Assembly (NCBI GenBank): GCA_964270895.1
Contig: OZ185440.1
DNA: 64,000 bases
Source of the DNA: Podarcis filfolensis
Lineage: Eukaryota
Direction: 5' to 3' (one strand)
Below the pieces are notes generated by a model, which had not been told where the DNA came from, searched no databases, and was given only the letters and a program-made list of their open reading frames with translations. Position 1 is the first letter of the stretch. Each line of letters begins with the position of its first letter. The position numbers and the translations under genes were made by a program. Below, one piece after another: positions 214-43,564 of the stretch.

Positions 214-3200
214 GTTCTGCCTACAAGCTTGTGTGTTATGTCACTAACTGGGAACAGTACAGGGACCCGCCAGCCAAGTTCACACCAGATAATATAGACC
301 CACATCTGTGTACTCATGTGATCTATGCTTTTGCTGGCATGGACAACAACCGACTTACCACTATAGAATGGAATGACGTGGAACTCTACAAGAAACTTAA
401 TGCCTTAAAGCAAAGGCAAGCAGCTCTCACAATGAATGTATTCACATCATGATGTTTGTTTAACGGCTGCTTCTAGACAATCCCTGACAATAGCAGCAGA
501 TGTAGAAGCAAAAGAAGGAAGAGTCTCATGGGGTCCCTTCATGAATTATGTGTTTAATAAATTAATTAAAGTACTTTTAACCCACACCTCACCACATGAT
601 TTCAGAGCAAGGTACAATACAAGTTAAAATACAACCAACACAATTCCAGTATATGTAGTTGAAAGAGCAGGCAAGAACACAACACATCTTAAAAATTACA
701 GTATATAAACTCTCAAGGAAACCACCCACAGGTTCCTTCATTGCAGAAACAGTACATTGATATTGTTCTCAATATCACACAAAAGCACAGGTAAACCGGC
801 AAGTTTTTACCTCACAGAGATAAAAGTGTCTCTGCCAATCATGCTTTCAGGGGGAGAGCATTTCTTAATTAAGGTGCCACCATAGAAAGGTCCCCATCCT
901 TTGTCACCACATAATGTTTTCCCCTTGGAGGAGCAACAATAAGAAGGGTCTCCTTCTAAGATCTGTGAACATGGGGAAGTGTTCCTTTAGAACTAAGACT
1001 TTTAAAATATTCACCTAAAAATATTAAGGGTGGAAGTGCCAAACAAGAGTTTGAAAGTATGTGTTTCCTAGAGATACTTGTCCAAGAGCTAGGATTGGCT
1101 ATGGCTCCTATGGAGCATACACATGATGGTAAATCTGTACTTTTTGCTATATAATGTGAAAAAAGTAATTTGGAGATGCCTGGCATTCAGGGGGGTGGGG
1201 TTGGTTGGAGTGATGGCTGATGTTTCCCTGTGATGATCATTTTTTGCCTAGTAGGATTCTGTAACTATGTTTCTGAAGACACTTGAGAGTGGAATGATAG
1301 TCATCAGCACACATATTCGTTTTGTTCTGCCCTGCCTTAATCTCTGATGAAAGAGCTTTTGCAGGTTTTTGAAGCACCAGGTTGGGGAAGACTGCCTTGC
1401 AGGAATGCAAAAGACAGTTATGAAAGGCTGCACGCTTGTTCTTTTCACTGTAATAGCATCTGCTTGGCCAGCCTTCTCTGTCCTTGCTTGGAACTGCCAG
1501 CAATCTCAAGAACAACAGCAAGCTTTTAAGTTCTGTCTCACTTTGGGCTCTGTCCCTGGGAGTTGCTTTAATTTCCCCAATGGCCCTGAAAAACTTTTGG
1601 GATTCTGCCCACACCCCTGAAAATGAACTAGAGGAGCTCTCAAAAGCTCTTTGGTTCTGAAATCTATATCCTACAATTATAAGGAGCAACTGGTGATGGA
1701 AGTCTTGGATATTTTGAGGTGGAGAGAGTAAAATTCCTTTTTAATTATCACAAAATATTTGTGTAATGTTAATTCCACTGTATCTTTTTCTTGCTTTCTA
1801 GGAATAATAAGCTGCTCACATTGCTGGCGGTTGGAGGGGGAAGCTTTGACAACCAGAAGTAAGACCCTTCTCCTTCTTATACTCATAGAAAGAGCAGAGG
1901 GTGTTCATGAGATATAGCTTCCTAAGAAATTTGTGATTTGGGACACCCGGCTTAAGGCATTTTGGAGAGCTTGAGTCTGACATAAAGAGCATTTCCTTTT
2001 CTGAGAAATGAATGTCCTTCAAAGATCAAGGAACATTTTCCCTCTTTTGTTTCTGTGTACACTATTATTCAGTGCGAGCCTCCTTCCCAGAGACGCAGTA
2101 CAGGCAGATAGTGGTTTTAATAAGAGAGTCTTTTTTTTAACAGATTAAAGAAGAGGGGGGAAAGGAAGAACCCCCCCCACCAACAAATGCAAGCTCCTTC
2201 TCCTCGTTGAATCATTCCACTTCCCTCATTTCTTTTCACTTGGAGAGGTTTGGTTGAAAAATCCCCCTAAATTTGGCCAAAACCCCAAAAAGAGTAAAAA
2301 GGGACTACTCCTAATTAGTAGAATGGGTGGGAGGGCACTGTGATGTAAACTGGCCTCACTCCACTCATATCTTGGGGTGGAGGAGTAATTTGATTCAGTT
2401 TATATTTAAAGATGAACTTACCAGCCAAATGGCCTGGCAGGCTGCCTTTTATCCTTGTCCTTGTGTGCATCCAGGAGTCCTGAGTCTTGTCCTGGGTGTG
2501 GGGCCAAGCGCCACCATTGACCAGTTGATCCCACACCCAGAAGAACACCCAAAAGGCCCTGCCGCCAGTGGCCAATTTGGCGGCAGGCAGATGATCCGGC
2601 CTGCCATTCGCCGGTTCATGGGAGTGGGCTTGGGGCCCTGCCCACAAAGCCGTAAGGGGCAAACGGACTTACCAAATTCATACTTTTTGAAAAATTATAT
2701 AAACTGAAACCTTCAGAATTCATACTTCTTCAAATTTTCCAGTGCGATTCCCCAGGTTATGTGTCCAACAATGCACATAGTAGACTAAAGTGTGCATAAA
2801 AATGCCTTATATTGGTGAAAATTACATCCAAAACTGTATTAGATTAGGGAAAATTTCTTGCAAAAATGTGTATAAAACTGCATATAAAAATGTTTATTAT
2901 GAGAAATTCACACTAAAATATTGAAGAATCCTCATGAGGAGTTTCAATTTATTTATTCATTTTTGTGGATTGTTGCAGAAATAGAAGCGAATTTAAGATT
3001 TTAAAAATTAGAAACTTGGAGAACCAATATCGACAGATTGGTCCATCCTTAGTCCCTACTGATGTCAAAGCTCTTCCATTTTATAGCAGCTGTTCATGAT
3101 GCCCAGCAAAAAAATAAGAGTGAAATATAGGGTGATGCAAGTTGTAAAAGGCAGCTGTCAAAAAATAACACATTTCTTCCAGGTTCACTTCCATGATATC

Positions 3201-6200
3201 CTCTCCAGCAAATCGGCAGACATTTGCCACCACATCAATCGATTTTCTCCGCAAACATGGGTTTGATGGTATGGACCTTGATTGGGAATATCCAGGTTCC
3301 AAAGGCAGCCCTGCAGAGGATAAGCATCGCTTCACCATCTTGACTCAGGTATGAAAATAAAATAATATAGATGTCCATCCCAGCTTCAGCAAAGGGTGCT
3401 GGAAGCCCCTAGGGAGATAGCATGGATCATACTTACTTTGACAAAAATGGTCAAAACCTTTCTTAAAAACAACAGTGAATGATTGTAACAGAGTTTCTTT
3501 ATTTTAAAATGGTATTTAAAATTAATTTCCTGGAATGTATACTGTAGTGATAGAACATATGAGTACCTCTGAGCATGTATAGAGTGCTTTTGTAATCACA
3601 ACCAGCCTCCATATATTTATTCTTCCACATGAAGAACAATGGTTGGTTTGGGTCCCAGTGACAAACAGTGTAATGCTATGAATATCTACTCAGAAGCAGG
3701 TTCCATTAAATTCAATGGGGCCTAAGTGACCATACCTGAGAGAAAGCACTATTAAACTTAATGGACTTTTCTTCTCAGTACACTTGTATTGGATAGCACT
3801 GTGAATTACTAAATATGACAAAGAAGACTCAACCATCAAGAAGAAGAATTGCTCAGATGCAATCAAATAAATAAAAATAAATAGGCATGCCCAACTTGTG
3901 TGTGGAGATTTATCTTTATTTATTGATTAAGTTTATATACCATCCTTCATCCGAAGATATTTCTCATCATGATCTGTATGGGTGGAAATTTCCAGCCTGC
4001 AAAAGGCCAGCTGTCCTTTGAAAGGTGTTCTGTTCAGTTGCACATGAGCAGCACCCAACTGATCCTGCTATTTCTCTCTGAAGGAACTAATAGCTGCTTT
4101 TGAGGAAGAGGGCAAAAGAACAGGACGCCCACGGCTGTTGCTTTCTGCTGCAGTATCTGCTAGCAAAAACACCATGGATGCTGGATATGAAGTTGCTGCC
4201 CTGGGGAAGTGAGTCACATGGTTTCTGCTAAGCGACATGCCCTGCGTCAGAATCTCTGTTGAACACCAGCTCTGAATGCTCTAACTTCTAGGTTTGGACA
4301 AATTGCTAAAGAACTCAGGAGAAAGCCGTTCAAATGAAAAGCCTCTGTTTTTCCTCCCTTCTCTTTCTGCTTTATTGCTATTATTATTACTTATTAAATT
4401 TGTGCTGCTGCTGAACCTGTACACAGTACACTACACTGGCTCTCCCAAAGATCCAGCCCATTTCAATAATTTTGAACCTCCTCTGGGGATTGATGTCCTG
4501 GTTTTGTAGGCTCTCATAAACAGTGGTTTGTAGGGTGGTATTTATTGACCATTGTGTCTATGCAGCCATACTGTGCTGTAGGCTTTATATAAATAAATCT
4601 GGGCCTCATTCTACAGTGCCTTTGGAAATATTTCTGAGGGCTTTTAAAGGAGCTGCTACATCATGCTTATGTAATCACAGGTTGTTGTTTTTTAAATTAT
4701 TTGTCTATGAATCAAAATAACTGTCTTATTATTATCACTAACAGTGTGGCTGTTGGATCATAGATTCCTTAATGTTTGAAGAAATTGTTCCTTCATCTTG
4801 CCATTCCTTTCTGTGTGCATCCAGGAGTCTTGATTTAATCAACGTGATGACCTATGATTTCCATGGAAGTTGGGCACCTCAAACAGGACACAACAGCCCC
4901 CTGCACAGAGGTCTACCTTCCTATGACTCAACGCCCTTCTTCAACAGTGTAAGAACAAACAACACATTGTTGTTGTTGTTTAGTCGTTTAGTCATGTCCG
5001 ACTCTTCGTGACCCCATGGACTAGAGCATGCCAGGCACTCCTGTCTTCCACTGCCTCCTGCAGTTTGGTCAAACTCATGCTGGTAGCTTTGAGAACACTG
5101 TCCAACCATCTCATCCTCTGTCACCCCCTTCTGCTTGTGCCCTCAATCTTTCCCAACATCAAGGTCTTTTCCAGGGAGTCTTCTCTTCTCATGAGGTGGC
5201 CAAAGTATTGGAGCCTCAGCTTCACGATCTGTCCTTCAAACAACACATAACCCAATCTTAAACTCATAGCTAAATTCCAGTGACAATTTCCCCCACCCAA
5301 TGCACTAAAAACTGAATCAAGCCTAAGCATTAGGGTGGCCACTTGTACACCACCAAAAAGGAGGAGATGCGTCATGAAAAAGACCTGAACAGATTTTCAT
5401 GTCCTAATTTATATGTCTAGATGCAAAGTTAGAACCAATGTCTATAAATTCAAATAGACATAGAAAACATTTTACCATAGTGGGGAAGATGGGACCAAGT
5501 GACCTGTGTGCTAGCTCAGTCTGCTGTCCAGGAGCTGTTACTGGGTGACTTCAAGGCCCCTGCTCTCCCTTTGCATGATTCCTTATCTTTAAACTGGGCC
5601 TGGACTGGACAACTCTTCAAAAAGAGGACTTCCTCAAAGAGAGGACTCTTCTCTGTCCAGTGGAACACATGGCCACCCTAGCAAACATGGGTGGGTGATT
5701 GATGATGAGGCTCAAAATACATGTTCTGTGTAGCTGCATGAAGAATTCCTCTTTTAAAAAAAAGAAAGTTCAAAGGCAGAGTATATTTGAGTGAATTTCA
5801 GCTCAAAAATCACCTTCCCCAAGCTCCCCCAAGCTTTTTTTTTCATTTACAAACATTTTTGGAAGACACAGAGACCCTGACTTCCCACAGATGACAAAGC
5901 AGCTTGAGGAGGTTGATCCAAAGAGGGAAAGGGCTAAGCAGCCCCTCACTGCCTGCCCTTCCTCTCAGCTCCTCCCAAATACTTTTGTCTTTTAAAAAAG
6001 TAAACTCACCGAGGAAAGAATGACAGAAGTCTGCATAATTTGTCTGTGCTTCAGGAATATGCCATGAAATACTGGAAGGACAATGGAGCGCCAGCTGAGA
6101 AACTCATGATGGGCTTTCCAACATATGGACAGTCTTTCAAACTTGCTAGTTCACGAACCGACGTTGGTGCTCCAGCCAGTGGTGGAGGTTCTCCTGGACA

Positions 6201-8962
6201 GTACACCAAAACTTCTGGGATCTTGGCATATTACGAGGTAAATGGGCCTTTGGCGCTTTATTACAGAATATTGACGACTGAGAGCTACTATAATGTAACT
6301 GATCATGTTGGGGAGGCAGAGTCAATTCCCACAGCTGTAAATCTCAAAGGGTGGGCTTGGGCAAATCATTTTCTCTTAACACATCTTATTTTGACAGGGT
6401 TTTTGTGAGGATAAAGTGGGATGATTCTGTGGAAGGTGCCTAAGACATAACCAAAGTCTTAGGCAGCAATCCCATGAATATTTATTTGGGAGCCATGCCA
6501 CGGGTACAGCCCTGTTCAGGCCTTCGCCTGAATAAATGTGGACTAAAACCAGGGAAGGGACAGAAGTGTCCATGTATGTTTCTCTGTTTCAGACCTTCCT
6601 GAACTGAGAGGGAAGATCTGAAAGCTGACACTTAAGTGCCTTCAGCAGAATGTGCTTGGCATCTTCACTGTGCTTGGGCTCCTTGCCTTATCAGGGTTTC
6701 TGGTGGGAGGAGTCCAAGCACCTATGGGAACATTTGGGATGGCACTTGGGTATGCATTTCTGCTCTCCGCTTTCCATTTTCAGTCAACAAGCATTTAGAG
6801 GAATGCCTGATTGGGGGCTTCAGTGTTCCGTCAATAATGCATAGGACCAGCATGTAGAGCTGCAATCCATTGCTAGGGAGCACCTGTTATTCAATGCAGT
6901 GGGATGTACTTCTGAGTCAACAAGTGTAGGCTCACACTTTTAGAGAAAACCAGAACAATTTGGTTACCATATACTGGAGTGGGGATTCTTGTCCAGCTCA
7001 AGGGCCACAGGCAAATATTGGTAGAGTGATGGATGCGACTTAACTTAGCAAAGTAGTTTACCTTCCAGCCACACAAAATCCATAGGTTTCATCCATCCAT
7101 AGGCCTCCATCCAGACAAGCTTAAGGTGTGATCACATGCCAAGAGCACATTCTAGCCAAGCAAAGGCACTCATGGAGGGTGTGGTGCAGGGCCATTGAGG
7201 CGTGTGCCCTGGGGAGAGTCCTGAAGGTCAGAGGGAGAGGCTGTGGAAGGTCTCATTTGGCTGTTGTATACAGTAAATTAATGCTGCAGACCATCAAACG
7301 CTGTACTCTTCTAGCAATAAAATAATCAATGATTCTGATAGGGAAGCTTGGACTGATTAACTTTTAGGATTATAGACTTTGTTTTTATTTTTGTTCATAC
7401 CCCCTTGAGTTTCTGCTCTTTATCTAAACAGGGATTCTATCATTTTGACAGGTGTGCCCATTTTTAAAGGGAGCTACCAAGGGATGGATCGAAGAACAGA
7501 AGGTTCCTTATGCTTTCAAAGCTGGAGACTGGGTTGGATATGACGACGAGAAGAGTTTTCAGTTTAAAGTGTGTCACTGCTTTGTGATAATTGCTACATC
7601 CTATGAGAATGAAAATCCTTTAGGCCCTCTAGCTGCTAACCAAATTTACAGCCACATTCTCACAGTCATGGGCTGTATCCAATGCCGTTATTCCACTAGT
7701 GCAGCAGACTCATGCAATGGAACTTCCCCCTTTTCTCCTATCCCTAGTGGCCCCTGACATGAAAAGTTTACAGCATCCTCTGGAACAGATTTTGAGGGCA
7801 CACAGGGAGAGGAGCGGAATTGGAATTGGAAGTCCAGTTGCATGGGTGGACCTTTGTGTACACATGTTCTTTAAGGCTCCATGTTATTTAAAATCTTCTT
7901 CTTTTCCCATGATACACCGTTCTGTTCCTCAACTCCATTCTTCCCCCTCTAACAGACAATCCGAATTCTGGGGCCTCTGAACATGTTTTTCTTTTTTTTT
8001 TTTTAGTGTTCAACTCAAATATTTTTTGGTACTTCTGGAAACCCTGGGATCCCCCAGGGCATGCTGATACCCTCTTTTATTTATAAGTAGCATTGTTTGA
8101 GTACCATCCTGTTGGCTGGCACACAACATTTTGGAAGTAGAAGGAGTGTACAATATTAAGAATTGTCTGCCTCATTCTTATTTCATCCTGGGAGTAAACA
8201 GAAATAAAATTCTGCTTCATCCCCTACACAAAATTAATGTTAGCAGCTCCAAGTGCTCTTTAGCCACCCTCTGTGGTTACCTCACAGAAAGAAGGAGCAT
8301 CTTATTTATGTCACCACAGAGTGGCACACTCTCGATTCACAAAAAATGGGTTACTGAGCCACTGTACGTTAGCTCAATTTCCTTTGAATGTTATGCTTAA
8401 ATGTAAATTGTATCTTTTTGTAGACTGCTTTGAGGTTGTTGGTTTTTTCTTTTTACAATCAAGTGGTATATAAAATGTCATCTAGTCCAACTCCCTGTTG
8501 TGTAGGAATCACAACTAAAGCACACATGACAGGTGGCCATCCAATCTCTGCTTAGAAGCTTTCAAGGAAGGAGAGGCCACCACCTCCCGAGGGAGTCCAT
8601 CCACTGCTAAACAGCTCTTACTGTCAGAAAGCTCTTCCTGATGTAAAGCCAGAATTTCCTTACGTATATTGTAAATGTGCTGCAGTGTCCAGAAGGAATT
8701 TGTAGTTGCCTGTTATTAGCAAATGATAGAAGAGGCATGTTATGTGACAACTATTATGGAATGGGTACATAAGCACTAGTCTGTGGGTTATTTACAAATG
8801 TCCCCCCCCCCCTCAACTTCTTTGCAGGCTGAGTTTCTGAAGAGGGAGAATTATGGAGGAGCCATGGTTTGGACTCTGGGGATGGATGACTTCTCTGGCA
8901 AATTCTGTGGCCAAGGAGCCAATGTCCTTGTGAATAAGCTTAAGGGTCTCCTAGGAAACTGA
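214..8962 (+). CDS. Gene A: GH18 chitinase (5'-partial), catalytic motif intact, no hinge/CBM14; OVGP1-lineage candidate
   Basis: Exons 214-415 (GC donor), 1802-1858, 3183-3348, 4084-4208, 4825-4948, 6055-6237, 7452-7568, 8828-8962 (TGA 8960-8962). Lengths 202/57/166/125/124/183/117/135 keep frame. Motifs [46 protein letters not shown]. Signal-peptide exons 1-2 are not in the window; about 387 aa if they total 55 nt as in the paralogues. Confidence 0.92.
4968..5236 (-). mobile_element. RTE/BovB-type LINE 3' fragment in gene A intron 7
   Basis: Minus-strand translation [25 protein letters not shown] is typical of the BovB/RTE RT C-terminus. (CAA)n tail; direct repeat CAAACAACACAT at 4956-4967 and 5237-5248 (TSD). 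Confidence 0.85.
8480..8645 (-). mobile_element. CR1-like 3' fragment
   Basis: GTCATCTAGTCCAAC...GGCCATCCAATCTCTGCTT...CCACCACCTCCCGAGG resembles reverse-oriented reptile CR1 3' ends; recognised by eye only. Confidence 0.5.
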
Positions 8963-9088
8963 GGTAATGACAAATTAGGCTGCAAGGCGCATGTTTCATT
9001 AAGCTACCAATCTATCGTCCAGTGAAGTTTGAATTAGGCATACTAATTACATCAGTTTCAACCCTTATTTTCTAACCTCTCTTTTTAG

Positions 9089-10925: not shown

Positions 10926-12057
10926 ATAGTGTCTATAAGTGAAGCTGGGGAGCAGCAGGAGGAAGAAAGACATGGAAATTGGAAGAAAAAGCTGGAATAG
11001 AGAGTGCTACAGAAGATTTGGACTCCAGGGACAAGTTGTTGGACAATAAGTCCTATCATCACTGACTATTGGCTATGCTGGTCAGGGTTCATGGCAGCTG
11101 GAGTTCAACAACATCTAAAGGGCCACAGATTCTCCATTCCTGATTTAGCTTGTGTTCTGTTTCCAGTAACGGTCAGATTCAACTGGAGGCTCAAAAGCAG
11201 GGCCTGATGGCTTAGTAAATCATCCCCATAGTTCTTAGAGGACAAGAAGTTCTGTGCAAGTTCATTTTAGCTTTCACAGCTCCGCTCTGTCAGTTTGACT
11301 ACATTGATTGTTGTTGTTTAGAGGCTTCTCAAAGTCTCATTTCCAGCATCATCAGCAATGGTTTTAGATTGCAGTAGCAAAACTAGAGGAAACTACTAGC
11401 TATGTTGCTGTTATTCAGCTCCACTTTGAGCTTAGGCTCCCACTTCTCTGCTATATCGCGTTCTCCTTTTTTCAACATGAAGCATTAGTATAGAGTCTTA
11501 TCTTGCACTGATATAGTGTCATGGAGGTGTGCCTTGCAGAAACAGCCTTGGGGATTTTAGAGATATATAATCTCAAAGTGACTTTTTATGGGGGGCTGAA
11601 GGCCAGTTGCATAAGTTTTTGGCATGGTGTATGGCTGCAAGTCACAAACTAATGTTCTCCTAGGGTTTTTTTGCTTTTTAAGCTGTCATTTAATGATAAC
11701 CACTTGTTGGGCATGAAGAATGGCAAATTGTGCAAGAATACTTTGGCCCCATTTGGACACAAATATCATTGCTTATTTATCTGACATCTGCATGTTGAGC
11801 CGTGTGCCTTGCATGCTATAAATAGTTGTCTAGAAAGGCTATTAGAGCCTCTTCACATATGATTACTCAACACTTGAGCAAGTTTAGACTAGGAATGGAC
11901 AAATCCGTCCATTCTGCTTTTATCTTAGTTTTCTGATCGTCAGCTCGCTTTCCACATTTCTGCATTGGGTTGCAGGGTTATTTTCTTTAAAAATTTCTCC
12001 TGAAAATATCATTTTAATGTTATGTTTTAATGCTGGGACCTTGGAGTGAAGAGTGGG

Positions 12058-12058
12058 C

Positions 12059-12111
<53 letters not shown>
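12058..12111. repeat. (TTG)n microsatellite
   Basis: Direct reading; explains the poly-Q ORF 11920-12165. Confidence 0.95.
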
Positions 12112-12112
<1 letters not shown>

Positions 12113-12461
12113 CCTTTGCCTACACAGAGGCTGACAACACTAGGGTTTGTTTTCAGCTTAACCACATATGTTATTGGGTTGTAAGATTTCTACAATTGAA
12201 CATTAAGTGATTAATTGAACATTCATTAAAATCATTGGGACGTTTGCTGTCGACGTTTGCTGACATCCAAATCTGTCAAAAATCAGAAAAAGATAGGCCT
12301 TTGTGGTTCTCTTCATACACACAATGTAATTTTTCATAAAGTCAACACTTTTTCCATCCTTGAAGTTAGATCTGTTTTCTGTCCCGGGATTTATTCTTCA
12401 GCCACCTGTGCACTTTAGCTGCCAGATGTATGCCCCTTTAGCAGGTGTGTGGCTCCCATAC

Positions 12462-12528: not shown

Positions 12529-15500
12529 ATGGGGAAGATGCTGCTGTGGGCAAGTGAGTGATCCTGTGTGTAATTTTACGTCTTGAGAAACATAAAGAGA
12601 CATTTCTTCCTAGAAACAAGGGAGGTGAACTTTGAGCTTAGACTTGGGAATGAGAACACCATCAGGTTTGCTTATGAGACAAATAACCCTGGAAATGAGG
12701 TGTTTAGCAAATTGAGTCAGATGGTTTTATGCATACTGTAATGGTGTTTTGTTGTTTTTTAATCTTTTGTAGGTCTGGCCATTTTGCTGCACTTGCAGCT
12801 TGGTAAGCAGGATTCTTTATTGCTCATAAATTTATTCCTCAAAAATAGATGGAATATCTGAGACAAATTGAGGGTGGGGGAGATGCTTTCAGGTTTGATA
12901 TTGTCGTTTTCATTTCTGCCCCCTCCTGGGAGCTTGCAATACTAAGGGTGTGATTATGAGTAGCAGCAACCAGCACAAAGGAATGTAACATTAAGAATGA
13001 GAGACTGTATCTTTGCATTATATAAATCCACAGATTTCTGTAAAGGAAATATATGGTCCCTCATTCTGGGGGTGATAGGAGTTGTAGTCAAAAACACCAG
13101 CAAAGGCTGGGCTAGAGACTATAACTTTCTAATTGAGTATTGTGCATGTATCTTAATCACAATGAGTTTCCTAAATCAAGAGGTAAGCGCACAGGGCCAG
13201 ACTGAACTAAGTTGTTGCACGAGCAGAATGAGATCTGCTTGTGCAATGGGACTTTGCTCTGGAAGGCTGAAGGAAAACCTAGAACAGGTTTAAGAGGTGG
13301 GAGGAGAGGGACAAAATTCCTGTTGCGTGAGCTGACCTCATTCCATTAACACATATAGTATGCCGGTTTTAGAGTCAGTTGCTTTGATTTCCATGTTGTT
13401 CTTGCCTATGACATTCACATCACAATGTTCTTTCTTACCTCAGGATCTTCTTACAAGCTGGTCTGTTATTTCACGAACTGGTCCCAGTACAGGCCTGATC
13501 CTGCTAGATATAAACCAGCAAATGTGGACCCCTGCCTGTGCACACATGTCATCTATGCCTTTGCTACTATGAGCAATAACAAGATCGCCCCCTATGAATG
13601 GAATGATGACGTCCTCTATCCACAGTTCAATGGTCTAAAAGAATAGTTAGTAAATTCTTTAAACACTTGGTAATTACGAAGAATGAACACAGATTGGTTA
13701 ATCTCAAAATAATAAGGCTTGTTTGGACCTGATCTGATTTTCTAAGCCCCCTAGTTGTAAATGTTTGATTCAGTTTTTTGGGGAAAAACAACAACCCTGG
13801 AAGGTTAATATTAGCTGCTGCAGAGCTGCAAAGTACTCTCTACTCTCTGCTCACTAGGCCAATGGCCAGAAGAGAGAAGGGCAGACAAGTCAGTTCTGGG
13901 CATAGCTGTCAAGTGTCCCTTATTTGAAGGGACAGTCCCTTATTCCAGTGCCATGTCCCACTGCTGTCCCTTATTGATGGATGTCCCTTAAATGTCCCTT
14001 AAATGATGTCCCTTAAATTTCAAAGGAAGCAGCTCCTCTCCCTCCCTCCCTGCTGGCCAGCGAGGAGGGAGGCTCCAACTGTGTTGCTTGGCTGTGTTGC
14101 TCACCCAATAAGAAGTCTAAGAACGACTGGGGGGTGGAGCTTGCATGCCTTGTGTGTGGCTAGTTAATGCAAGCTGAGGGGGTTTTTGAATACTGGATGC
14201 CATTTTGTTGCACATGCTGCTGCAAACTTTGCAGTGCAAAGCCAGGCCGGGGAACCATCTTAAGTTGAGGCTGCATAGGCCTTGTGGTGCATGTGATTCA
14301 GATTCTATTCAGTTGAACCTCTGGTTACAAAGTTGGTTGGACAGTGTTCTCAAAGCTACCAGCATGAGTTTGACCAGACTGCAGGAGGACAGGAAGACTG
14401 GAGTGCCTGGAACAGGTGAGGCTGCAGGTCCCTTATTTTGGCTGCTGGTCCCTTATTTTCAAGGCTGCTGGTCCCTTATTTTCAAATCTGTAAGTTGACA
14501 GCTATGGTTCTGGGCACTGCTACAACAGCCCAGAGTCTCCCTAGTGCTAAAGAATCTATCCTGTGCTATTGTCTAATATAGGGATCTCAGATCTGCAGGA
14601 GTCTTAGTCCAGGCAACCCATCACTGTTGAAACCCGCTTTAAAAAGGTAAAGGTAAAGGACCCCTGACAGTTAAGTCCAGTCGCGAATGACTCTGGGGTT
14701 GAGGTGCTCATCTCACTTTACTGGCCAAGGTAGCCGACGTTTGTCCACACAGGGTTTTTCCGGGTCATGTGGCCAGCATGACTAAGCCGCTTCTGGAGAA
14801 ACCAGAGCAGCACACAGAAATTACCTTTCCGCTGCAGTGGTACCTATTTATCTACTTGCACTTGACATGCTTCCCCTCAAAAATATGAGACTGACTTATA
14901 CTCTGTCAGAGCATTAGTTCTGTAGTCAAACACTATTCACACTGATTGGCAGCTGCTGTCAGGCAGAGGGCTCTTCCTCATCCTGAGATCCTTCCATTGG
15001 AATGGCCACTGGCTGATTATTATTATTATTTTGCATACAGTACATGCTCTCTACTCACTGAACTGACTGTTTTATGCCTTTTGCCTGCCAGTTCCTTCTT
15101 GTATCTGTGTCCCAGAACATGCCACCTCTCCAGGACTCAGGGAAAACTTAACTTGACATTAAGCACATTATTTAGTATAGGAGAGTCCCAACCAGAGAGT
15201 CTCAAGGGAGGTCCTAGCATGGGCAGAGAAGCTGTTACAACATTAACAATCTGGAAATGCTGTGGGGACAATGGCTTGATGTACCTGTCTGCATGTCTAT
15301 TATTTGCACTGGGAGGTAATCTCTTCCTAGTACCAGTGACAGCCTTCCTCCCAGGGCACAAATAGGGGTTGTGGGGAGGCTGCTGCTCGATATCAATGGA
15401 TCAAAGTCCCTTCCCATGATTCTGTGGCCCCAACCCAGATCACTCCTCATGGCTATTTAGTAAAAAAAAAAAAAAAAGAACAAGCACACAGTCCTATGAT

Positions 15501-18500
15501 CAACACAGTATCTAGTTTGGTCCTCAGACCACGCTTAATGGCAGTTCACGAAACAATAAACGATGATGGGAAAAGCAACAATTGCATATTATACATTTAT
15601 TTCCTAATTTTTCCAATCCCTTCCATAGCAATGAGAAAATGGTTACCCTTTTGGCGATTGGAGGATGGAATTTCGGCACCCAGAAGTGAGAACTTTTCTT
15701 TCACATGTATAATGAACAAGATGGGGAGGGGAGGGGGGTAGTTTGTGGCTACTGCTGCTGGCCTGCTGAGGAAGAGGCAATGAATGGATAAAAGGGATGT
15801 GGAGGATTTTCACGAACCTCTGGTGGATAGAAAGATAAGACCACTGTGGAGTTAAAGGAGGAGAGTTGGGGGTTTTTTTTGAAGAGTCAGAGGGAAGTAT
15901 GGGATAAGCAAGTACAGTAGAAACATTTTGTGGGGAAGGAAGTGGTAAGAGAAGCTGAAACAAGCTAGCATTGCTTAATTTTGTGGTTCATATCGTGTAT
16001 ATCCTCATACTTTCAGTAACTTAAAAACAAATCCGGTTTTGTTAGGTTCACCACAATGGTTGCTACAGCTGCTAACCGCAAGACTTTCATCGATTCAGTG
16101 ATTACGTACCTTCGTCAGTATGGGTTTGATGGGATTGATCTGGACTTTGAATACCCAGGTTCTCGGGGCAGCCCCCCTGAGGATAAGCATCGTTTCACTA
16201 TTTTAGTCCAGGTGAGGAAGCTTTGCCCAGCATCCTGTGAACATCGTGCCTTGCTCTCTTTGCATAAACAAATGTAATACGGTATGTGAATGAGTCGATT
16301 ATTTCAGATCCTGAAATCACAAAGCAGATGCTGATTGATATGGTTGCTCAGTCACACATTACCTTTTCTCATGTGATGGGAGTTATCCTCAGCCAGGAAG
16401 GCTCCCATCAACAACAGACACGCTTGTCCAAATAAAGCACTAATTCCAGCTAAATGTTGCTAGAAATAAGGTGCCACTGCCAATTACACAATCACATAAT
16501 AGAATATCCTTTCCTAGAAAAAGGAATATACTTCACTCCATTTCCAGGTTTATAAGAATGTTAAAATAATTTGAAATTTCTTCATATTTAGCTATGTTTA
16601 AATGACAATCAGCTGAGTGTACTACTACTACTACTAATTTATTATTTGTACCCCCCATCTGGCTGGGTTTCCCCAGCCACTCTGGGTGGCTTCCAACAAA
16701 GATGAAAAATACATTAAAATGTCACACATTAAAAACTTCCCTGAACAGGGCTGCCTTCAGATGTCTTCTAAATGTCAGGTAGTTGTTTATCTCTTTGACA
16801 TCTGATGGGAGGGCGTTCCACAGGGCGGGCGCCACTACTGAGATTAGTTAGATAAAGAAGCAATCTCAGAAGCAATGGCTGAGCTTTCTAAATTCCTCCT
16901 TATATGTACATAATGGCACCATAATGGCACTTTGGTTCATATACCAAAGAAGTGGGATTTCTTCATATATATATATAAAAGATGTTGCATACCACCAATT
17001 TTTGAAACCTTGCACACAATGAATTAGCTAGAACTGAATGCAGCTGTTAACTTTACTCACCCATGCCCTTCTCCAGGAAATGCTGGCTGCTTTCTCAAGT
17101 GAAGCCACCAGGAGTGGGCAACCCAGACTGTTGATCACAGCAGCTGTATCTGCTGGCAAAGCAACCATTGATGCTGGATATGAAATTGCAGAGATAGGAA
17201 AGTAAGTGACAATGTGCTAAATTGGGGACTTGTGAAAATAGGACAAAGCAAGGCAAAATTCATTATTCATTTGGAGGGAATTATTAATTATATTAAGGAA
17301 AAGGTGCATACAGAGAAATATATACATGTCAACAATATGAGACAATATATTTGTGCAGTTTTGCCAAAGATTTAAACTTGGTTGTTTGACATTCAAGAAT
17401 TTAGATGCAGCATTTTGAATTCTTTGAGTGACCACTAAAGGTCTAGTCACAGTTCAATATAAGTGGCTGCAATATCCACTTACCTGGGAGTAAGTCCCGT
17501 TTAACTTTATTAAGTTTACAGATAGATATGCATAGGATTGCAATGCTGGACCCAAAGGACACTAAGCTTTAGCTTTCTAGTCAATGTCCTCTTTAGCTTG
17601 TTCTGTGATAAAAATGAACAGTGTAGTCAACTTGAACTTCATTTGTTGGGAAGGTTGGATGAGAATTTAACAACTGGACAAATATCCTTGCAGAAAAGGG
17701 GAGCAGGAGCTGAGGATCATATAGCTAGCTGTTTAGCAAACTACAAGTCAGATGTACACCATATTGTTCAAATGCATACAGTTTTTGTATGGTTTCATGC
17801 AATCTTCAAAAGCTAATGTGAAAGACAATTGGGTTCAGCCCACCAGTATCAAGGGGATCTTTATTTCAGCGTATGGATCCATTAGGCAAGTTGTTATTAC
17901 TCTGCTTTTTATTTATTTATTTGCACAAGGGTTCTAGATTTCATCAGTGTGATGACCTATGATTTCCATGGAGGATGGGACACCTTCACAGGTCACAATA
18001 GCCCCCTGCATGTGGGATCTGCAGATAAAGGCGATTTTGTGTACTTCAACTGCGTAAGGAAATGCTAACAAACTATTGTTTGCTCAGAGCCAGTAAAAAA
18101 AATGGTCAGTTCATACCTATATTTATTATGTTCATATTGAAAGGAATTTGCCATGAAATACTGGCTAGAAAATGGGGTTCCTGCTCAGAAGCTTATGATG
18201 GGGTTTCCTACTTATGGCCGTACCTTTAGGCTTACCACAGCTGACACATCGGTTGGCGCTCCTGCATCTGGTGCCGGATCCATTGGACCTTACACAAGGG
18301 AAGCTGGTTTCTGGGCTCATTATGAGGTAAATGAAACATTTAAAAAGGACCAAAGTTTAAAAGCATGCAGTATTTAAAAATATCTAAGCAAAGTGCATTT
18401 TGTCTCTCAGCAGTTATAATCCTGTTTTACAATACTAATGTCTTGCCGTTCACCCATCCGGGTTGCTTATAATCAAGATTACATACAATTGTTTTATATA

Positions 18501-20205
18501 ATTCCACCACATCCATTTTCATCCTCTTTAACAGGTTCCTTAATATGTTCTGATACTTTTTCTTGAACTTCAAAAACTGCTGTGGACTTCGCATATAGGG
18601 GAGAAGTTTTTCCCATGGACTAGAAAAGGTTTCCAGTCCTCCTAAAAAGATTCTAAATTTGTGTCTCTCATCAGTGCCATTGATTTTGCCATCTCTGCAC
18701 AATCCATGATTTTCGCCAGCTGTTCTTCCTTTGAGGGCATTCTTTCCTTCTTCCACTTCTGTGCCTAAAGATTCCTTGTCACTGTGGTTACATGCATAAA
18801 TACAATTGAAGCTTCCTTTGGAATTTCACTGTCTAGTATCCCCAGCAGGAAGGCTTCTGGCCTCTTGGGAAAAGTCACTTAAAAAAAATAATCATTATTT
18901 ATCAGGTGCATGGTTTTTCCTTTTTGGTATAATTACAGGAAATGCTGCTAGGAATATTACATTAGCCACAGAAGTGCACCTCAAAGTATAGAATATATTT
19001 CACTGATAAAACACCAAGTGCCTGTACAGTTGTTTGCTGTTGTTTGCTAACATGAATGTTCCTTGACAGATTTGTACGTTCTTACCAGAAGCGACAACCG
19101 TCTGGATTGAAGATCAGAAAGTCCCTTATGCCTTCCTGGGGAATGAGTGGGTTGGGTTTGATGATTTAACCAGCTACAAGTACAAGGTATGTTATTTTTT
19201 TTCTAGTGCATCTAACAGATTTATCTGTACCCACACTCAAAGTACCTTGCAAGATTTACCAGTGCAATGTTTGAGCTTTATAACAATGCTTGGTGCATAT
19301 GTGTGTGTGTGTATATGTACTGCCGACACTGATCTTGGGATATTTTTTTGCGAGTCAGCTGCTGACATCATTGAATCAACTTTAAGTTAACATTGACTTT
19401 TAGGAATGTAGTCAAGCCCTTAGATGCATTGATCTAGTCCAGTGTTTGTCTTTCCCAAACCCCATGAGTCTAAAGAACAGCACCCCAACAATTCATGTCA
19501 TGTTAGTGCGTGCAACTGACATCAAATGTGATGGGAATATCTTGTACTTGCTTTCTGCGCAGGTTGAATTTTTGAAAGCAAACAACTTTGGAGGGGCCAT
19601 GGTTTGGGCCATTGACCTTGATGATTTCCTAGGCACTTTCTGCAATACGGGGCCATATCCTCTGATATCACATTTGAAGACACTCCTTGACATACAAACT
19701 CCAGGTAGGTCAATTTATTGAGAAGAATTCTGCACTAAGACGTGTATATGCATGAGCGCACATGCGCAGAGCGCCATGCTGCAATCTGGAGGTGCAAGGA
19801 AACAAGTAGCCAATGATAAACAAATTATGTGATGTGCAAAGACACTTCCCAATATGTTTTAGCAAAAGGGAAGCAATTTAATGCACACCCAATCCCCTTT
19901 GAAACCTCTGTGGGGATGTTCCCTCTAAGTGACTGGCTTTGCACTTTAGTACAACTGCAATGTATTAAACAACTTCTCTCAAGTGTCTTCTCTGATTATA
20001 TTCTCCACCCTTAGGTTGTGTAGCTCCACCCCCTCCAACAGCCCCACCTCCTCTTATTTTCTGTGAAGATAAAGCTGATGGTATCTATGCCAATCCGGAT
20101 GACAAATCAAAATTCTATGAATGCTCTGGGGGCAATACTGTTTCCAAGAGTTGCGGAGAAAGTCTGGTGTTCGATGAGAGCTGCAAGTGTTGTAACTGGC
20201 CTTGA
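12529..20205 (+). CDS. Gene B: complete GH18 chitinase with signal peptide, short Pro-rich hinge and CBM14, 453 aa
   Basis: Exons 12529-12553, 12773-12802, 13444-13645, 15629-15685, 16046-16211, 17077-17201, 17930-18053, 18144-18326, 19070-19186, 19563-19704, 20015-20205; all GT-AG; 1362 nt. [19 protein letters not shown] signal, [11 protein letters not shown] motif, six-Cys CBM14 ending CKCCNWP*; AATAAA 20230-20235. Confidence 0.95.
13901..14506. mobile_element. Non-autonomous DNA transposon (MITE) in gene B intron 3
   Basis: Terminal inverted repeats CATAGCTGTCAA / TTGACAGCTATG; internal repeated GTCCCTTA motifs. Confidence 0.6.
14644..14871 (-). mobile_element. Sauria-type SINE, 5'-truncated
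   Basis: AAGGTAAAGGTAAAGG tail and body homologous (reverse complement) to the copies at 32017 and 61430. Confidence 0.8.
18430..18760 (-). mobile_element. L1/Tx1-like ORF2 C-terminal remnant in gene B intron 8
   Basis: Minus-strand frame [43 protein letters not shown] resembles reptile L1 ORF2 ends. Confidence 0.55.
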
Positions 20206-23120: not shown

Positions 23121-26100
23121 TTAATCACTGTAGTATATGCTCAGGTAGGCCACTAGGTTCCGGTGCTTCCTAAACTCTTTGTCCGAAAGCAGCTAAAACA
23201 AATACAAATATAAAATATATTCAGCGTTGTTCAAAAACCCAATAAGCACAATAAAGAAGCAAATGTTTTAGTGCAGATTTCTATCTATAGCTCCATGTCC
23301 AGAAAACAAACCGTATGAGACAAAGGAATTCCACAGAAAGAAATGTATGTTATTGTCTTCTGAAAGATCTCTTATTCCTTCCCGGGTCCTTCCCAAGGGG
23401 TCTGAGACTCCGACACCTTGTCTCTGCTCTGCCCTCTTTATACCTCAGAGGGTTCTAGGAGACCAGGGGGCGGAAGCTGGTCACAACAGGAGAGAGACCC
23501 CATTGGCTTCTTCAGCAGATTGCCTCATCTCTGCCTCTTGGCCCCCAGACTCTCCAGCCTCCACTTCTGCCTCTGATTCTGGACTGCTGCCTGCCACAGC
23601 CTCTTCTTGCTCACTAAACCCTGTTACTTCATCAGCTTCTGGCACCTACTCCTCCCAGTCTGCTCCCTCTTCTCCCTCTGACCACTCATTGTTGTCCCAC
23701 CACCAATCCCCTGGTTCTGAGCCTTCACCCTTTAGGGGTTCTGTTGGGGGTTCCCCAGCTGGTGCCTCCCACCACTCTTCTGTACCCAGCCAGTTCATGA
23801 CAGATACAGCCCTGAAAAAAATGGCTCTCCCTTGCTGAAATCAAGCCTGTTTGAGATTCTAACATTCTTAATCCCCAAATTGTCACAATGATCATTTAGA
23901 AAACTGTATCTGAATTTCATACCTCACTTCTCAGCGTTCTTTTCGCTGGCATTGGTATTAAAGACCAGTCTGGAGCCCCAAACTTCCCTGGCCAGGTGAC
24001 ATGCCTGTGTGGCATGCCATATGGGTCATATGTTCCAGGTCTAGAGAGAAAAGTCTTTGCATCATTTCTTCAGTGAACTAATATGCTCCATTATGCTGTG
24101 CACTTTACACATTCCACATTAATACACTGAGATAATGTCTTCATATATTGTGCTTTATTCCGTCATGTTTATACTAGACTGGTAAATTTAAGAGTTATTT
24201 TTTTAAAGAAGACTGTAGCTACATCTCAACAGTGATTTGGGTAAATTGCAAAAAGCAACTAAGAATAGGCAAGAGATTAGGGATCCCTGTAATTTTTTAT
24301 TTCAGGGTTGTTATTTTTTTTTACAAAAATGAACTTTGGCTCTCAGTGCCCATACAAAACCATGTAGGAAATAATGTCTCATGAAAATAATGTAAAATAG
24401 AGTCTGTATTAGTTGCAGCTTTTGTACCAGGGCAGTCCAACTTTCCATACCAAGTGGGCTGCAAGAGTACTTTTACACAAAACCTATGGGCCACACACTG
24501 AATTAAATTTCTATATTGTAAATTAAAGTGTTCACAATATATTTAATATACACAATTGATATATTTAATTAAATATATATAATTAAATACAAGATTTAAA
24601 GATTTAACATATTTAGTTACTAAACAAATTCAGTTCACAAACAAGTATATGCACTTTTGTTTAACAACGCATGATGCAAAAAAATATTTTTAAGGCTTTA
24701 AGATGGCCTTTCTTGACTGTTGCCAAGGACTGCATGCAGCTTGTGGGCTGTGGGCTGGACCACCCTGTTTTGGTTAGTAAACAAGTATAGCCCCATGTAG
24801 AGTGTATTACAGTCATCTAATATAGAGGGCATCAAAGCATGATTATAGCCAGGTTATTCTGGTCCAGGACTAGATGGTGAATCAGCTAGAGCTGGAAGTA
24901 GCCACTCTTTGCCTCTGAAGCCACCTGGGCCTCAAGTGACAATGCTGGACCAAGGAGTACCCAAAGCTCTGATCTTGCTGTTTCAGGAGGATTGCAACCC
25001 TGTCTAGAACAGCCACCTCATCAATTTCAGGGCAGGGAATCACCCACCAAAAGCACCTCCATCCTGTCAGGATTCTGCATTACATTATCAGTTTGGGTGA
25101 CTATAATCCTTGGCCCCGCTTGAGCTTTCATTAAGACCTTGCTGCTCTCATTATAAGGGGAAGCTTTGTAATTCAAGAAATGAAAAATGGTACCCAGGAT
25201 AAAAGTCTTTGTCCAGAAGCTTCTCAGAAAATCGTGGCATATTGCTGCAAAAAGAGACATGTGTCGGCTGGTGGCGCCTATGGTGGTCTCTGATCCATAT
25301 AGACTGGTATGCAGTAGGATCAGGAGTCACATGCTATAAATGGAGCATATAAAATTAAGTTACAAGACAAATCCTCTATTAAAATATTGTTATAGTACTG
25401 GTGAGGGGGTTGCCCCGCTAAACACTAGAAACGAATAAATACTAGGATTTTGATTAACTGGGATATTAAGGTTCAGAACTGTGCCAGACAGGGAATTCTG
25501 GGAATTCCTGGACTGGCTTATGCAAATTCTCCTGGCTGGCTATGGGGAAGAAGAGCAGACCTGTTAGCATTATAAAAAAGGTGCTGATAGGCCATAGGAG
25601 GATCCTTTGGGCTGGGGAGCCAGACGTCAAAGGTTGCCGGGGTAACTATGTGTTTGAGGGGGCAGGAAAAGTGAGTTTGGAAGCAGGGATTCCTGGGAAG
25701 AAGACGGAGGAAGTAGGGCAGAGATCCATCTTGGAGAGGGAGGTGAAAGGGTCTCCTGCACTGTTGTGGACCATGCTGTAATTCACACACTACAGATTCA
25801 TTTTGACTTGACAATCCAGGAAGAAGGTGGAGTTACATACTCATTAAATTCCACTCAGTTCATTGAGGTTTACAGCATAGTCCTAACCAGGTCTATTCAG
25901 AGTAAGTCCTACTGAACTCAATGGGTCTTACTCAATAATGTGTGTCAAAGACTGCAGCCCTAATTTCCTTTCCTGGGCAAAGGAAAGTTCAGCAAGTATT
26001 GTAATTTAATGGCAATACTAAATTTCTTACGTTGAAGCTGCCTTATCTTGGGTCAGTGAACTGGTCAGTGCACTGGTCCATAGTACTGTCTACTCTAACT

Positions 26101-28554
26101 GGCAATGGTTATCCAAGGTCTGAGCTAGAGTTCTTTTGCTCTCAGCCCTCATTCTGCATGCAAAGCATGTGTTCTGCCACCTTGAACCCTGCATGATGGA
26201 GAACAGAGAATGCCTCTTCTAAGAGGATGCTTGCTGCAATATCCCTATTTATCACTTAAAGCAAAGAATTACTGCTTTTTTCTTTAGAAAATGCTTTTTT
26301 CATCATATTTAATTAATTGCTCAATCAGCTACAACTCATACTATTTATCAATTAAGATTTCATTAGTGGCACAATACATGTAACAAATAAAGATTGCAGT
26401 TTAAGAACCGGCAAAAGCAGAGCCTTGTAGCACCTAAAGAGCATGGCTCAGGACATTTTTTAAAACCTGCTAACATCTAATTCCATAAACAGCTTACTTC
26501 AGGACAGACATGCTGAGGCCAGATTGAAATCAATGGAATTATTCCAGGACTATTGTAGAGGAAGTATAATAGACTATATAAAACACAGTACAGTAACGAC
26601 TGAAAGCGGTCTTTACCTTGCTGAGTAGTCCAAAACGTGGGGTTGTTCTTGCTCCCATGGTGTAACCTTTAGTACTCTCTGGTCTGCGAGCCAATTGGTA
26701 TAGAAGGTTGTCCTTCTATTAATTTTTATTTAGGAAAGAAAAGCACTTTGGTTATTACAATGCTACACATTTTATACACTTTACTATTTGTTATATTCAT
26801 ACATCACCCTTCTTCCAAGGAGCAGTGTACATAGTTCCTGAAACATTTAATCCTTAAAATCCTGTGAGATAGGGGCATAGGCACCAACTTGAACAAAGTA
26901 TTGAGGCACAATGCAAAGGGCAGCCCATTTTTAGACGCAGTTCCACTGAGAGTATGGATACCAAATTTCCTTTCTTTACTTCAAAGTGAAGATACGTAGA
27001 GAGAAAATACAGCTAAATCAAATACAGTATAGTTTACCTCTGCATAGTTATAAGCTCCAGGTCCACGATCAGGATCACCTTTAATTGGCACATTCTCATT
27101 GCCTAACCGATCTGGAGGGTAAAAAACGGGGAATATTCTTCTCTCCTGGCACGATCCAAATGAGTTTCGTTGCTGTGCAGCTGCAAAAACCAGGAATAGT
27201 TATGAGTGTCATTTAGAAAGAATACCATCCGACTTGCAGCATGTACTGCTACTACCGACAAATGATGGGATACAAAAATAAATAAAGGTATGGTGCATTT
27301 TTCTGCCAATTGTACTGTCATCAGCAGTGACTTGTGAGGGGGAGCAGAAGCTACAGTGTCCTCCTAGCAGTGATGGGAGGGGATGTGGCAGCAAGATTGG
27401 GGAAGCCCCAGGGTAGTGGTGGTGACCCTGCAGATGCACACTTCCCCTGAAATGCCCCTTGTACTGAATTCAGCCTGGGAGCCAACTGCGGTCAAAGCAT
27501 ATTGGAATAATGGTGGACATCTAACTTCAAATGAACAATGAAATTCCATTATCATACACAGTGGTGGGAATGTTTGAACAACTAGTAATCAATAAGAATT
27601 AAAATGGGATGTTTTATACGCAGGGATGGAAATAAACAGAAATGACAAGTGAACAGAAATGACTTCTTCAGCTCCAGGACTGAGAATTATTTTTTGTGCG
27701 ATCTCTTTTCATTGTTAAATGTTAAAACATAAAGCAAGAACCACTCTGACCTTGGGGTCCTACTGAATTCCACTGGACTCACTCCCAGTAAAGTGTGTAA
27801 AAGAGGTGGACAGCTCAGCTGGTTAGAGTAGGGTGCTGATAATGCCAAGGTTGCAGGTTTGATCCCGTTATGGGACAACTGCATATTCCTGCAATGCAGG
27901 GGGCTGGACTAGATGATCCCCAGGGTCCCTTTCAACTCTACAATTCTGTGATTGCTACCCTACATTGCGTAGAGTTAAACATGAAAAATTTGCTGTGGCT
28001 CCAGTCATGACGAAGACTGCTCTGCATGGTCTGCTAGCATGCCCCAGAATCCTTTGCAACATGCAGCTGATTCCTGGGCAGACAACTGCAAGTTTTACAG
28101 TATCACCAGAGGGTAAAAAACCCTATTGGTTTACCACTACCCTTGGCGTGTATTTCTCATTTGGGGACTCTAAATGGCCATATGTTTAGGTTGTGTACAC
28201 ACTCGAAAGCACGTTCTGTAGAATTCAAATAATTCTATGTAACCCCACACAGAGTTACATTTCCCAACAACGCCAAACACACTACAGTGCCCGGAATTCT
28301 TTGAGGGAAATTATGTGCTTTCAATGTATGTGGTGTGTAACTACGGCGAAAGAAAGGGGTGGGCTAAACTGTCTGAGGGAAAGATCCCGTTTCAGCTCAG
28401 CAAAAGCTCCCTTTTCAGCCCATTCCCCGGACGGGGGAGAAGGGAGACGTGAGCTCGCCTGGCGCACCTGGGCGACCTGCTCGCCTCACACTCGTTCTGG
28501 CCAATCCGTGCCCGCCTCACCTGAGAGCTCCCACGTCAGCTGGCGTTGTCCCAT
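23121..28554 (-). CDS. PIFO: Pitchfork / ciliary microtubule-associated protein 3 (PIFO/CIMAP3), 201 aa
   Basis: Exons 28554-28521, 27180-27038, 26715-26617, 25333-25194, 24040-23923, 23192-23121; all GT-AG, phases consistent, 606 nt. Motifs SFGSCQERRIFP, RGPGAY, KGYTMGART, PGTYDP, WPGKFGAPDW, DKEFRKHRNLVAYLSIYY match PIFO as I recall it; PIFO is the known CHIA neighbour. Confidence 0.93.
23316..23887 (-). mobile_element. LTR-like repeat in PIFO intron 5
   Basis: TGTGACA start on the minus strand and a purine-rich body like the LTR-like element at 47961-48954; boundaries and TSD unresolved. Confidence 0.35.
24428..24767. mobile_element. hAT-type MITE
   Basis: Imperfect TIRs CAGGGCAGTCCA / TGGACCACCCTG, GGGCTG subterminal motifs, AT-rich core. 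Confidence 0.5.
27805..27953 (+). mobile_element. tRNA-derived SINE with CR1-like tail, in PIFO intron 1
   Basis: A-box (AGCTCAGCTGGTTAGAG) and B-box-like (GGTTTGATCCC) head followed by GGACTAGATGATC...CAACTCTACAATTCT tail; not a functional tRNA. Confidence 0.7.

Positions 28555-43511: not shown

Positions 43512-43564
<53 letters not shown>

Follow-up and report, generated by a model that had tools for sequence, protein, structure and literature searches.

We analyzed a 64-kb stretch of genomic DNA from the lizard Podarcis filfolensis (contig OZ185440.1, assembly GCA_964270895.1; the whole stretch is hereafter the window), which contains no N and harbors four GH18 genes termed A, B, C and D. 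Comparison of sequences, trees and gene order indicates that gene B (12529–20205, + strand) is very probably the lacertid ortholog of an amniote-wide active chitinase, the type of 450–453 amino acids (aa) that insectivorous mammals retain between OVGP1 and PIFO, and a paralog of OVGP1. Gene B, OVGP1 and the lineage of gene A, which lacks a carbohydrate-binding module (CBM), are three separate lineages. The story tying gene B to oviductin (OVGP1, also MUC9) is corrected accordingly: the linking features are ancestral states of the whole subfamily, and mammals keep the true ortholog. Gene B is already annotated in RefSeq, and for mammals the literature describes its family, the gene cluster and how CHIA1-2 are linked to OVGP1. 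Our literature search found no reptile OVGP1/CHIA phylogeny, and the searchable literature yielded no explicit statement of 1:1 orthology between a squamate gene and the 453-aa paralog of mammals; the present assignment is a small addition.

Gene B encodes a complete chitinase

The exon model of gene B, read from the sequence, runs from an ATG at 12529 to a stop codon at 20203–20205. Its 11 exons, with an AG acceptor and a GT donor at every exon border, join into a coding sequence of 1362 nt that encodes 453 aa without internal stops (Table 1). The protein starts with MGKMLLWAS and carries KLVCYFTNW at residues 23–31 and TYGRTFRL at residues 266–273. The catalytic residues D133, D136, D138 and E140 and the cleft residues W99-N100 are all present, and the MTYD and GGAMVW motifs are intact. 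A Pro-rich hinge of 14 aa, flanked by two Cys, leads to CBM14; together they form a tail of 62 residues after residue 391 with 7 Cys, the same as in the mammalian orthologs. Six exons matched the Pfam family Glyco_hydro_18 (PF00704), and exon 11 matched CBM_14 (PF01607). Pfam, PDB and HMMER searches were run per exon, and the joined 453-aa model was compared in scripts only; the PDB ranking for exon 8 was acidic mammalian chitinase (AMCase), then CHI3L2, then CHIT1. Two Podarcis proteins align with gene B over 453/453 residues, XP_053249125.1 of P. raffonei (P0381) with 99.6% identity and a P. muralis protein (P0172) with 99.3%, and both are named "acidic mammalian chitinase-like" in RefSeq. 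The exon model, the Pfam matches and the RefSeq match bear out the original prediction insofar as it described a complete chitinase with signal peptide, catalytic motif, W99, a Pro-rich hinge of about 14 aa and CBM14.

Public runs contain spliced contigs from which introns 5–10 are removed exactly as predicted, so gene B is transcribed and processed as modelled. These six introns are all of the GT..AG type, and their joints were seen in runs X1, X3 and X6, of which X1 and X3 belong to one study and X6 to another. The transcript reaches the 3' untranslated region, with a contig of X3 extending to at least 20238.

Phylogenetic position of gene B

An HMMER search of the protein library with exon 3 returned mainly fragments and multi-domain invertebrate proteins, along with a turtle fragment (P0137) and a marsupial OVGP1 (P0146). 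Both were then used as queries for a word search, and further lacertid, marsupial and placental sequences came from cluster look-ups; primate sequences entered as database proteins only. The classical families were anchored by the halves of two fused models, assigned against PDB: hamster P0285 (a CHIT1 fragment plus CHI3L1) and reindeer P0275 (CHI3L2 plus classical AMCase). Trees were built with FastTree from 183 sequences, and with IQ-TREE from 80 sequences over 465 columns under LG+C20+F+G4 with posterior mean site frequencies (PMSF). Supports are given as ultrafast bootstrap/SH-like approximate likelihood ratio test (UFBoot/SH-aLRT). The two programs agree on the main groupings.

Three quarters of the sequences (60/80) form a clade (100/97) that comprises OVGP1, the gene A lineage and a 45-sequence clade of full-length active-type chitinases (99/97), which holds gene B and excludes OVGP1. 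In the 45-sequence clade, the squamate B proteins of Podarcis, Zootoca, Hemicordylus and Tiliqua are sister (100/98) to mammalian proteins of 450–466 aa from Monodelphis, Macrotis, Dasypus, Tamandua, Tupaia, Orycteropus, Carlito and Elephantulus. Its remaining members are the mammalian "long" paralog (483–528 aa), a sauropsid group of 466–504 aa and amphibian genes. The OVGP1 clade of monotremes, marsupials and placentals (100/100) is without gene B, and the CBM-less gene A lineage consists of lizards and turtles (100/99). The pairing of OVGP1 with the gene A lineage is weak (93/67), and both are long branches. The branch of genes C and D also holds reindeer classical AMCase, bird CHIA and teleosts (99–100), gene C being sister to reindeer AMCase. 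CHIT1, CHI3L1 and CHI3L2 make up a separate group, with CHIT1 nearest to the invertebrate outgroup. In line with the original prediction, gene B is nested in neither classical CHIA nor CHIT1 and falls into the 60-sequence clade with OVGP1 and gene A.

Gene B shares about 78–79% identity with the 450–466-aa proteins of Monodelphis, Dasypus, Tupaia and Elephantulus, and 66–70% with other lizard paralogs; the former value points to strong purifying selection. Since squamates and mammals both carry the B lineage, it dates to the amniote ancestor. A CHIA1-type chitinase is in this way traced to that ancestor, and it is unusually conserved in sequence and in its 62-residue tail across lizards, marsupials and placentals.

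Gene order around PIFO

In the window, A and B are transcribed in one direction, followed by PIFO, C and D in the opposite direction. Gene B is found on the same side of PIFO as mammalian OVGP1 and is transcribed toward PIFO. The two genes are convergent, with gene B ending at 20205 and the 3' end of PIFO near 23127, which matches the layout of the 520-aa chitinase gene and PIFO in Tamandua. The three exons of the window PIFO are colinear with a 220-aa opposite-strand gene past that Tamandua chitinase (joint tblastx E 4.5e-26), which we take to be PIFO from its sequence and from the use of PIFO as a synteny marker for the mammalian chitinase cluster (PMC11789784); the candidate PIFO exon had no Pfam or PDB match.

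On Tamandua chromosome record CM043337.1, the order is OVGP1 (10.835–10.849 Mb), a pepsin-like gene immediately upstream of the next chitinase, the 453-aa gene (10.889–10.900 Mb), the 520-aa gene (10.928–10.941 Mb) and the convergent 220-aa PIFO. The 453-aa gene is the chitinase gene nearest to OVGP1. Direct adjacency of the 453-type and the long type is supported by a Tupaia fused model, in which the 453-type precedes the long type, and by accession numbers that run consecutively for the two genes in Tamandua, Tupaia and Elephantulus. In published mammalian work, tree and synteny likewise put OVGP1 together with CHIA1-2 on one side of PIFO (PMC11789784).

These arrangements do not agree with the "OVGP1 position" that the original prediction assigned to gene B. 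The PIFO-proximal gene is gene B and the PIFO-distal gene is OVGP1 (Tamandua), where the 453-aa ortholog has OVGP1 on one side and on the other the 520-aa gene adjacent to PIFO. Nor is gene B the counterpart of OVGP1, for it has its own 1:1 mammalian orthologs, and Tamandua carries that ortholog together with OVGP1 on one chromosome. The PIFO-adjacent slot is occupied by gene B in the lizard and by the 520-aa "long" paralog in Tamandua. The A–B pair mirrors the OVGP1–453 pair in gene order.

In Podarcis raffonei, an 839-aa model, models of 480 and 476 aa, A (387 aa) and B (453 aa) follow one another on one strand, so that at least A, the 476- and 480-aa models and one further model are distal to gene B. 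At least three GH18 plus CBM14 models (839, 480 and 476 aa) upstream of A were seen there on CM049755.1 (56.88–56.94 Mb), and the lizard cluster has seven or more tandem chitinase genes. Compared with the mammalian cluster, it has extra sauropsid-specific paralogs of 476–481 aa and no recognisable OVGP1. PIFO splits the lizard cluster into two subclusters, a layout shared with mammals. The Tamandua gene between OVGP1 and the 453-aa chitinase encodes a pepsin-like aspartic protease of 390 aa (A1 propeptide plus Asp domains), and shrew "pepsin B" proteins fall into a loose cluster with chitinases via a fused model.

Motifs across the family

The alignment table shows KLVCYFTN and TYGRTFR in all parts of the 45-sequence clade and also in OVGP1; they are nearly complete in the gene A lineage and partly present in CHI3L2 and CHIT1. 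More generally, the motifs common to gene B and OVGP1 are also present in CHIA2-type, sauropsid and amphibian genes. The original prediction had taken motifs of the KLVCYFTNW and TYGRTFRL type as a link to OVGP1; they are ancestral states shared across the CHIA1/CHIA2/OVGP1 superclade. It is classical CHIA that carries the derived states, namely H208, TYGH269 and exons 8/9 of 62/40 residues (versus 61/39). From lizard to placental, the B orthologs have S208 in common, and their tails all measure exactly 62 residues and contain 7 Cys. Gene A has G99-S100 where gene B has W99-N100.

The catalytic motif of OVGP1 decays stepwise, from FDGLDLVFEYP in monotremes through FDGLDLFFQYP in marsupials to FDGLDLFFLYP in placentals, although one sampled dasyurid (Antechinus) already has FFLYP. 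In the OVGP1 clade, the monotreme proteins P0310 (platypus) and P0449 (echidna) show D138V, keep E140 and lack the CBM cysteines; they are intermediate between active chitinases and therian OVGP1. Echidna P0449 is named "acidic mammalian chitinase-like". At residue 139, OVGP1 has the Phe of the B/CHIA2 group (F139) and the gene A lineage has Trp (W139). The character evidence on the nearest relative of OVGP1 is thus mixed.

Compared with known systems, gene B agrees with mammalian CHIA1/CHIA2 in clade (100/98 with the 453-type), 11-exon plan, catalytic motif, S208, TYGRT(F/M)RL, the hinge plus CBM14 tail of 62 residues and the side of PIFO. OVGP1 shares with it the GH18 superclade, KLVCYFT, TYGRTF, F139 and exons 8/9 of 61–62 and 39 aa. 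It differs in having lost D138 and, in therians, E140, in lacking the CBM14 cysteines, in its separate clade and in its tail of about 45–320 aa with 0–1 Cys (mucin-like in placentals), where gene B has only CBM14 and the 14-aa hinge. Classical AMCase (human CHIA = CHIA5, PDB 3FXY and 8FG5; C and D in the window) has the same GH18 plus CBM14 architecture and exon plan but differs in H208, H269 (TYGH), the 62/40-aa exons 8/9, a Gly/Ser-rich hinge and its clade (99–100). CHIT1 is likewise an active GH18 plus CBM14 enzyme with R269 and no His at 208, but it groups with CHI3L1/CHI3L2 and occupies another genomic locus in mammals.

Three other identities of gene B were ruled out. Classical AMCase was dismissed by the residues S208/R269, the exon 8/9 lengths and the tree; CHIT1 by the tree, in which the hamster CHIT1 fragment goes with CHI3L1/CHI3L2; and OVGP1 by the kept D138/E140, the CBM14, the tree and the PIFO-adjacent position.

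A putative model for the function of gene B

The predicted product of gene B would be a secreted enzyme, with a signal peptide and a GH18 (beta/alpha)8 barrel that carries the full DxxDxDxE motif (proton donor E140) and the cleft residue Trp99. A short rigid Pro-rich hinge would join the barrel to CBM14, which would anchor the enzyme to chitin. Three residues, R145, H208 and H269, are linked to the acid optimum of AMCase. Gene B keeps R145 but has S208 and R269 in place of the two His, which are retained in C and D and also in reindeer and bird CHIA; C and D further have the TYGH269 motif, a Gly/Ser-rich hinge and CBM14. In the tamandua pancreas, CHIA1 and CHIA2 are very highly expressed (PMC11789784). 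We propose a division of labour in which gene B may digest dietary chitin near neutral pH, possibly in the pancreas or intestine, complementing C and D as acid gastric enzymes.

Alternative readings

In the original prediction, gene B was an ancestral full-length stage in the OVGP1 position, succeeded by gene A through loss of the CBM and by OVGP1 through loss of catalysis and gain of a mucin tail. Gene B does share F139 and S208 with monotreme and marsupial OVGP1, and the two sit in one 60-sequence clade. Nevertheless, such a succession is highly improbable. Mammals have a direct ortholog of gene B, located in Tamandua on the chromosome that also bears OVGP1, the B lineage is present in both squamates and mammals, the shared motifs extend to CHIA2-type, sauropsid and amphibian genes and partly to CHI3L2 and CHIT1, gene B and OVGP1 differ in their position relative to PIFO, and gene A belongs to its own lizard and turtle lineage and does not derive from gene B. 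The approximately unbiased (AU) test, performed on a reduced set of 43 taxa under LG+F+G4 with each constrained search completed, also rejected the grouping of OVGP1 with squamate B only (delta log-likelihood (lnL) 21.5, p-AU 0.038). What stands of the proposed ancestral architecture is that gene B keeps the old architecture; it is a paralog of OVGP1 and no earlier step on the line leading to it. Another account would have OVGP1 arise by tandem duplication of a CHIA1-like gene, sister to or inside the whole B/CHIA1 clade, with gene B as its closest living full-architecture proxy, still a paralog. The AU test rejected neither OVGP1 with the whole B clade (delta lnL 13.4, p-AU 0.33) nor OVGP1 with the mammalian B orthologs (delta lnL 20.6, p-AU 0.17), in Tamandua no chitinase gene lies closer to OVGP1 than the 453-aa gene, F139 is absent from the gene A lineage, and a published tree restricted to mammals recovers a CHIA1-2/OVGP1 clade (PMC11789784). 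Against it, the maximum-likelihood trees place OVGP1 outside the 45-sequence clade and beside the gene A lineage, a grouping that scores the highest likelihood of the AU set and is likewise not rejected (p-AU 0.72); with OVGP1 and gene A on long branches, either placement of OVGP1 may be an artefact. We regard this origin of OVGP1 as doubtful though worth keeping in view; OVGP1 may have branched off beside the whole B/CHIA1 clade or beside the gene A lineage (best tree). If this origin were true, gene B, whose length and architecture would have hardly changed from the amniote ancestor onward, would be the best living model of oviductin's ancestral enzyme, and the CBM loss in the gene A lineage would be independent and parallel. 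A reading of gene B as a decaying gene, or as one for a chitinase-like lectin, is scarcely credible. Many GH18 paralogs of the cluster family did turn into lectins (CHI3L1/2, OVGP1), a precedent with nothing specific to gene B, whose catalytic residues, W99 and MTYD/GGAMVW motifs are intact, whose frame is open with canonical splice sites, which is transcribed and correctly spliced, and whose identity to the mammalian orthologs implies strong purifying selection.

The assignment of gene B to an amniote-wide, CHIA1-type chitinase thus remains the preferred reading, and the following points weigh against parts of it. The rejection of squamate B with OVGP1 in the AU test is marginal and comes from the reduced set. 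No turtle, crocodilian or bird ortholog of gene B was found in the sampled sequences, and "amniote-wide" here means squamates plus mammals. The Tamandua loci are read as unflipped, an orientation on the record that is deduced from the order in the Tupaia fused model, the consecutive accessions and the literature placing OVGP1 and CHIA1-2 on one side of PIFO. The CHIA1/CHIA2 nomenclature of mammalian chitinase paralogs reportedly goes back to Emerling et al. 2018 and Allio et al. 2025, and the mammalian 453-type ortholog of gene B is most likely CHIA1 in these terms; the label comes from the order OVGP1–453–520–PIFO and indirect pig and armadillo clues. In pig, the "long" protein fits the expression of CHIA2 in boar. 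In armadillo, CHIA1 has been reported as pseudogenized, yet NCBI predicts a 466-aa armadillo protein in the gene B clade. The near-neutral digestive role proposed for gene B in pancreas or intestine, with C and D acting in the stomach, draws on two residues and the tamandua data, and we lean toward it with some reserve.

Other features of the window

The positions of the gene B exons and of the neighbouring genes are listed in Table 1.

Table 1. Exons of gene B and other genes in the window
Feature	Positions	Strand	Remarks
Gene B exon 1	12529..12553	+	25 nt; ATG, 8 signal-peptide codons + 1 nt; GT donor; N-terminus same in RefSeq Podarcis proteins
Gene B exon 2	12773..12802	+	30 nt; signal-peptide hydrophobic core; AG/GT, frame continuous
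Gene B exon 3	13444..13645	+	202 nt; KLVCYFTNW, GH18 barrel start; Pfam Glyco_hydro_18 4.9e-11; AG/GT
Gene B exon 4	15629..15685	+	57 nt; AIGGW99N100FG, substrate-cleft Trp (motif table); AG/GT
Gene B exon 5	16046..16211	+	166 nt; D133, D136, D138, E140; Pfam 7.2e-15; joint to 17077 in spliced contig
Gene B exon 6	17077..17201	+	125 nt; joints 16211/17077, 17201/17930 in X1/X3 contigs
Gene B exon 7	17930..18053	+	124 nt; MTYDFHG; S208 (His in acid AMCase); Pfam 1.2e-08; spliced-contig joints 17201/17930, 18053/18144
Gene B exon 8	18144..18326	+	183 nt = 61 aa; TYGR269TFRL; Pfam 1.1e-10; spliced-contig joints 18053/18144, 18326/19070
Gene B exon 9	19070..19186	+	117 nt = 39 aa; joints 18326/19070, 19186/19563
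Gene B exon 10	19563..19704	+	142 nt; GH18 domain end; joints 19186/19563, 19704/20015 in X1, X3, X6
Gene B exon 11	20015..20205	+	191 nt; 14-aa hinge + CBM14 + stop; Pfam CBM_14 3e-11; 7 Cys in tail
Gene A	214-8962	+	First two exons beyond left window edge; no CBM
PIFO ortholog	23127..27178; three coding exons 27163-27032, 24051-23920, 23186-23127	-	tblastx
Gene C	43440-32511	-	Classical acid chitinase type
Gene D	58967-52821	-	Classical acid chitinase type

Introns 3 and 5 of gene B contain high-copy repeats at 14300–14900 and 16650–16850. Contigs with 90–99% identity to these repeats occur by thousands in all four runs, at a depth of 10^4–10^5, unlike the flanking intron, and the repeats are probably expressed elements resembling short interspersed nuclear elements (SINE-like). 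About 400 bp 5' of the gene B start codon lies a (CAG/CTG)n microsatellite of about 18–20 units (12046–12134), which appears in the list of open reading frames as poly-Q, poly-L, poly-V and poly-C. At the end of gene A (8955–8975), a TGA stands one base ahead of a GTAAT donor-like site.

Intron 7 of gene C harbors a degraded retrotransposon without long terminal repeats (non-LTR), a remnant of a long interspersed nuclear element (LINE), at 38424–40221 (+). Its endonuclease (PF14529/PF03372) and reverse transcriptase (PF00078) domains are in separate frames. The strong purine skew at 36–40 kb is attributed to this element; tandem repeats were checked as its cause and none were found. In intron 2 of gene C, directly 5' of exon 3, an AAT/ATT trinucleotide run at 43441–43560 (-) gives poly-I and poly-N in two frames.

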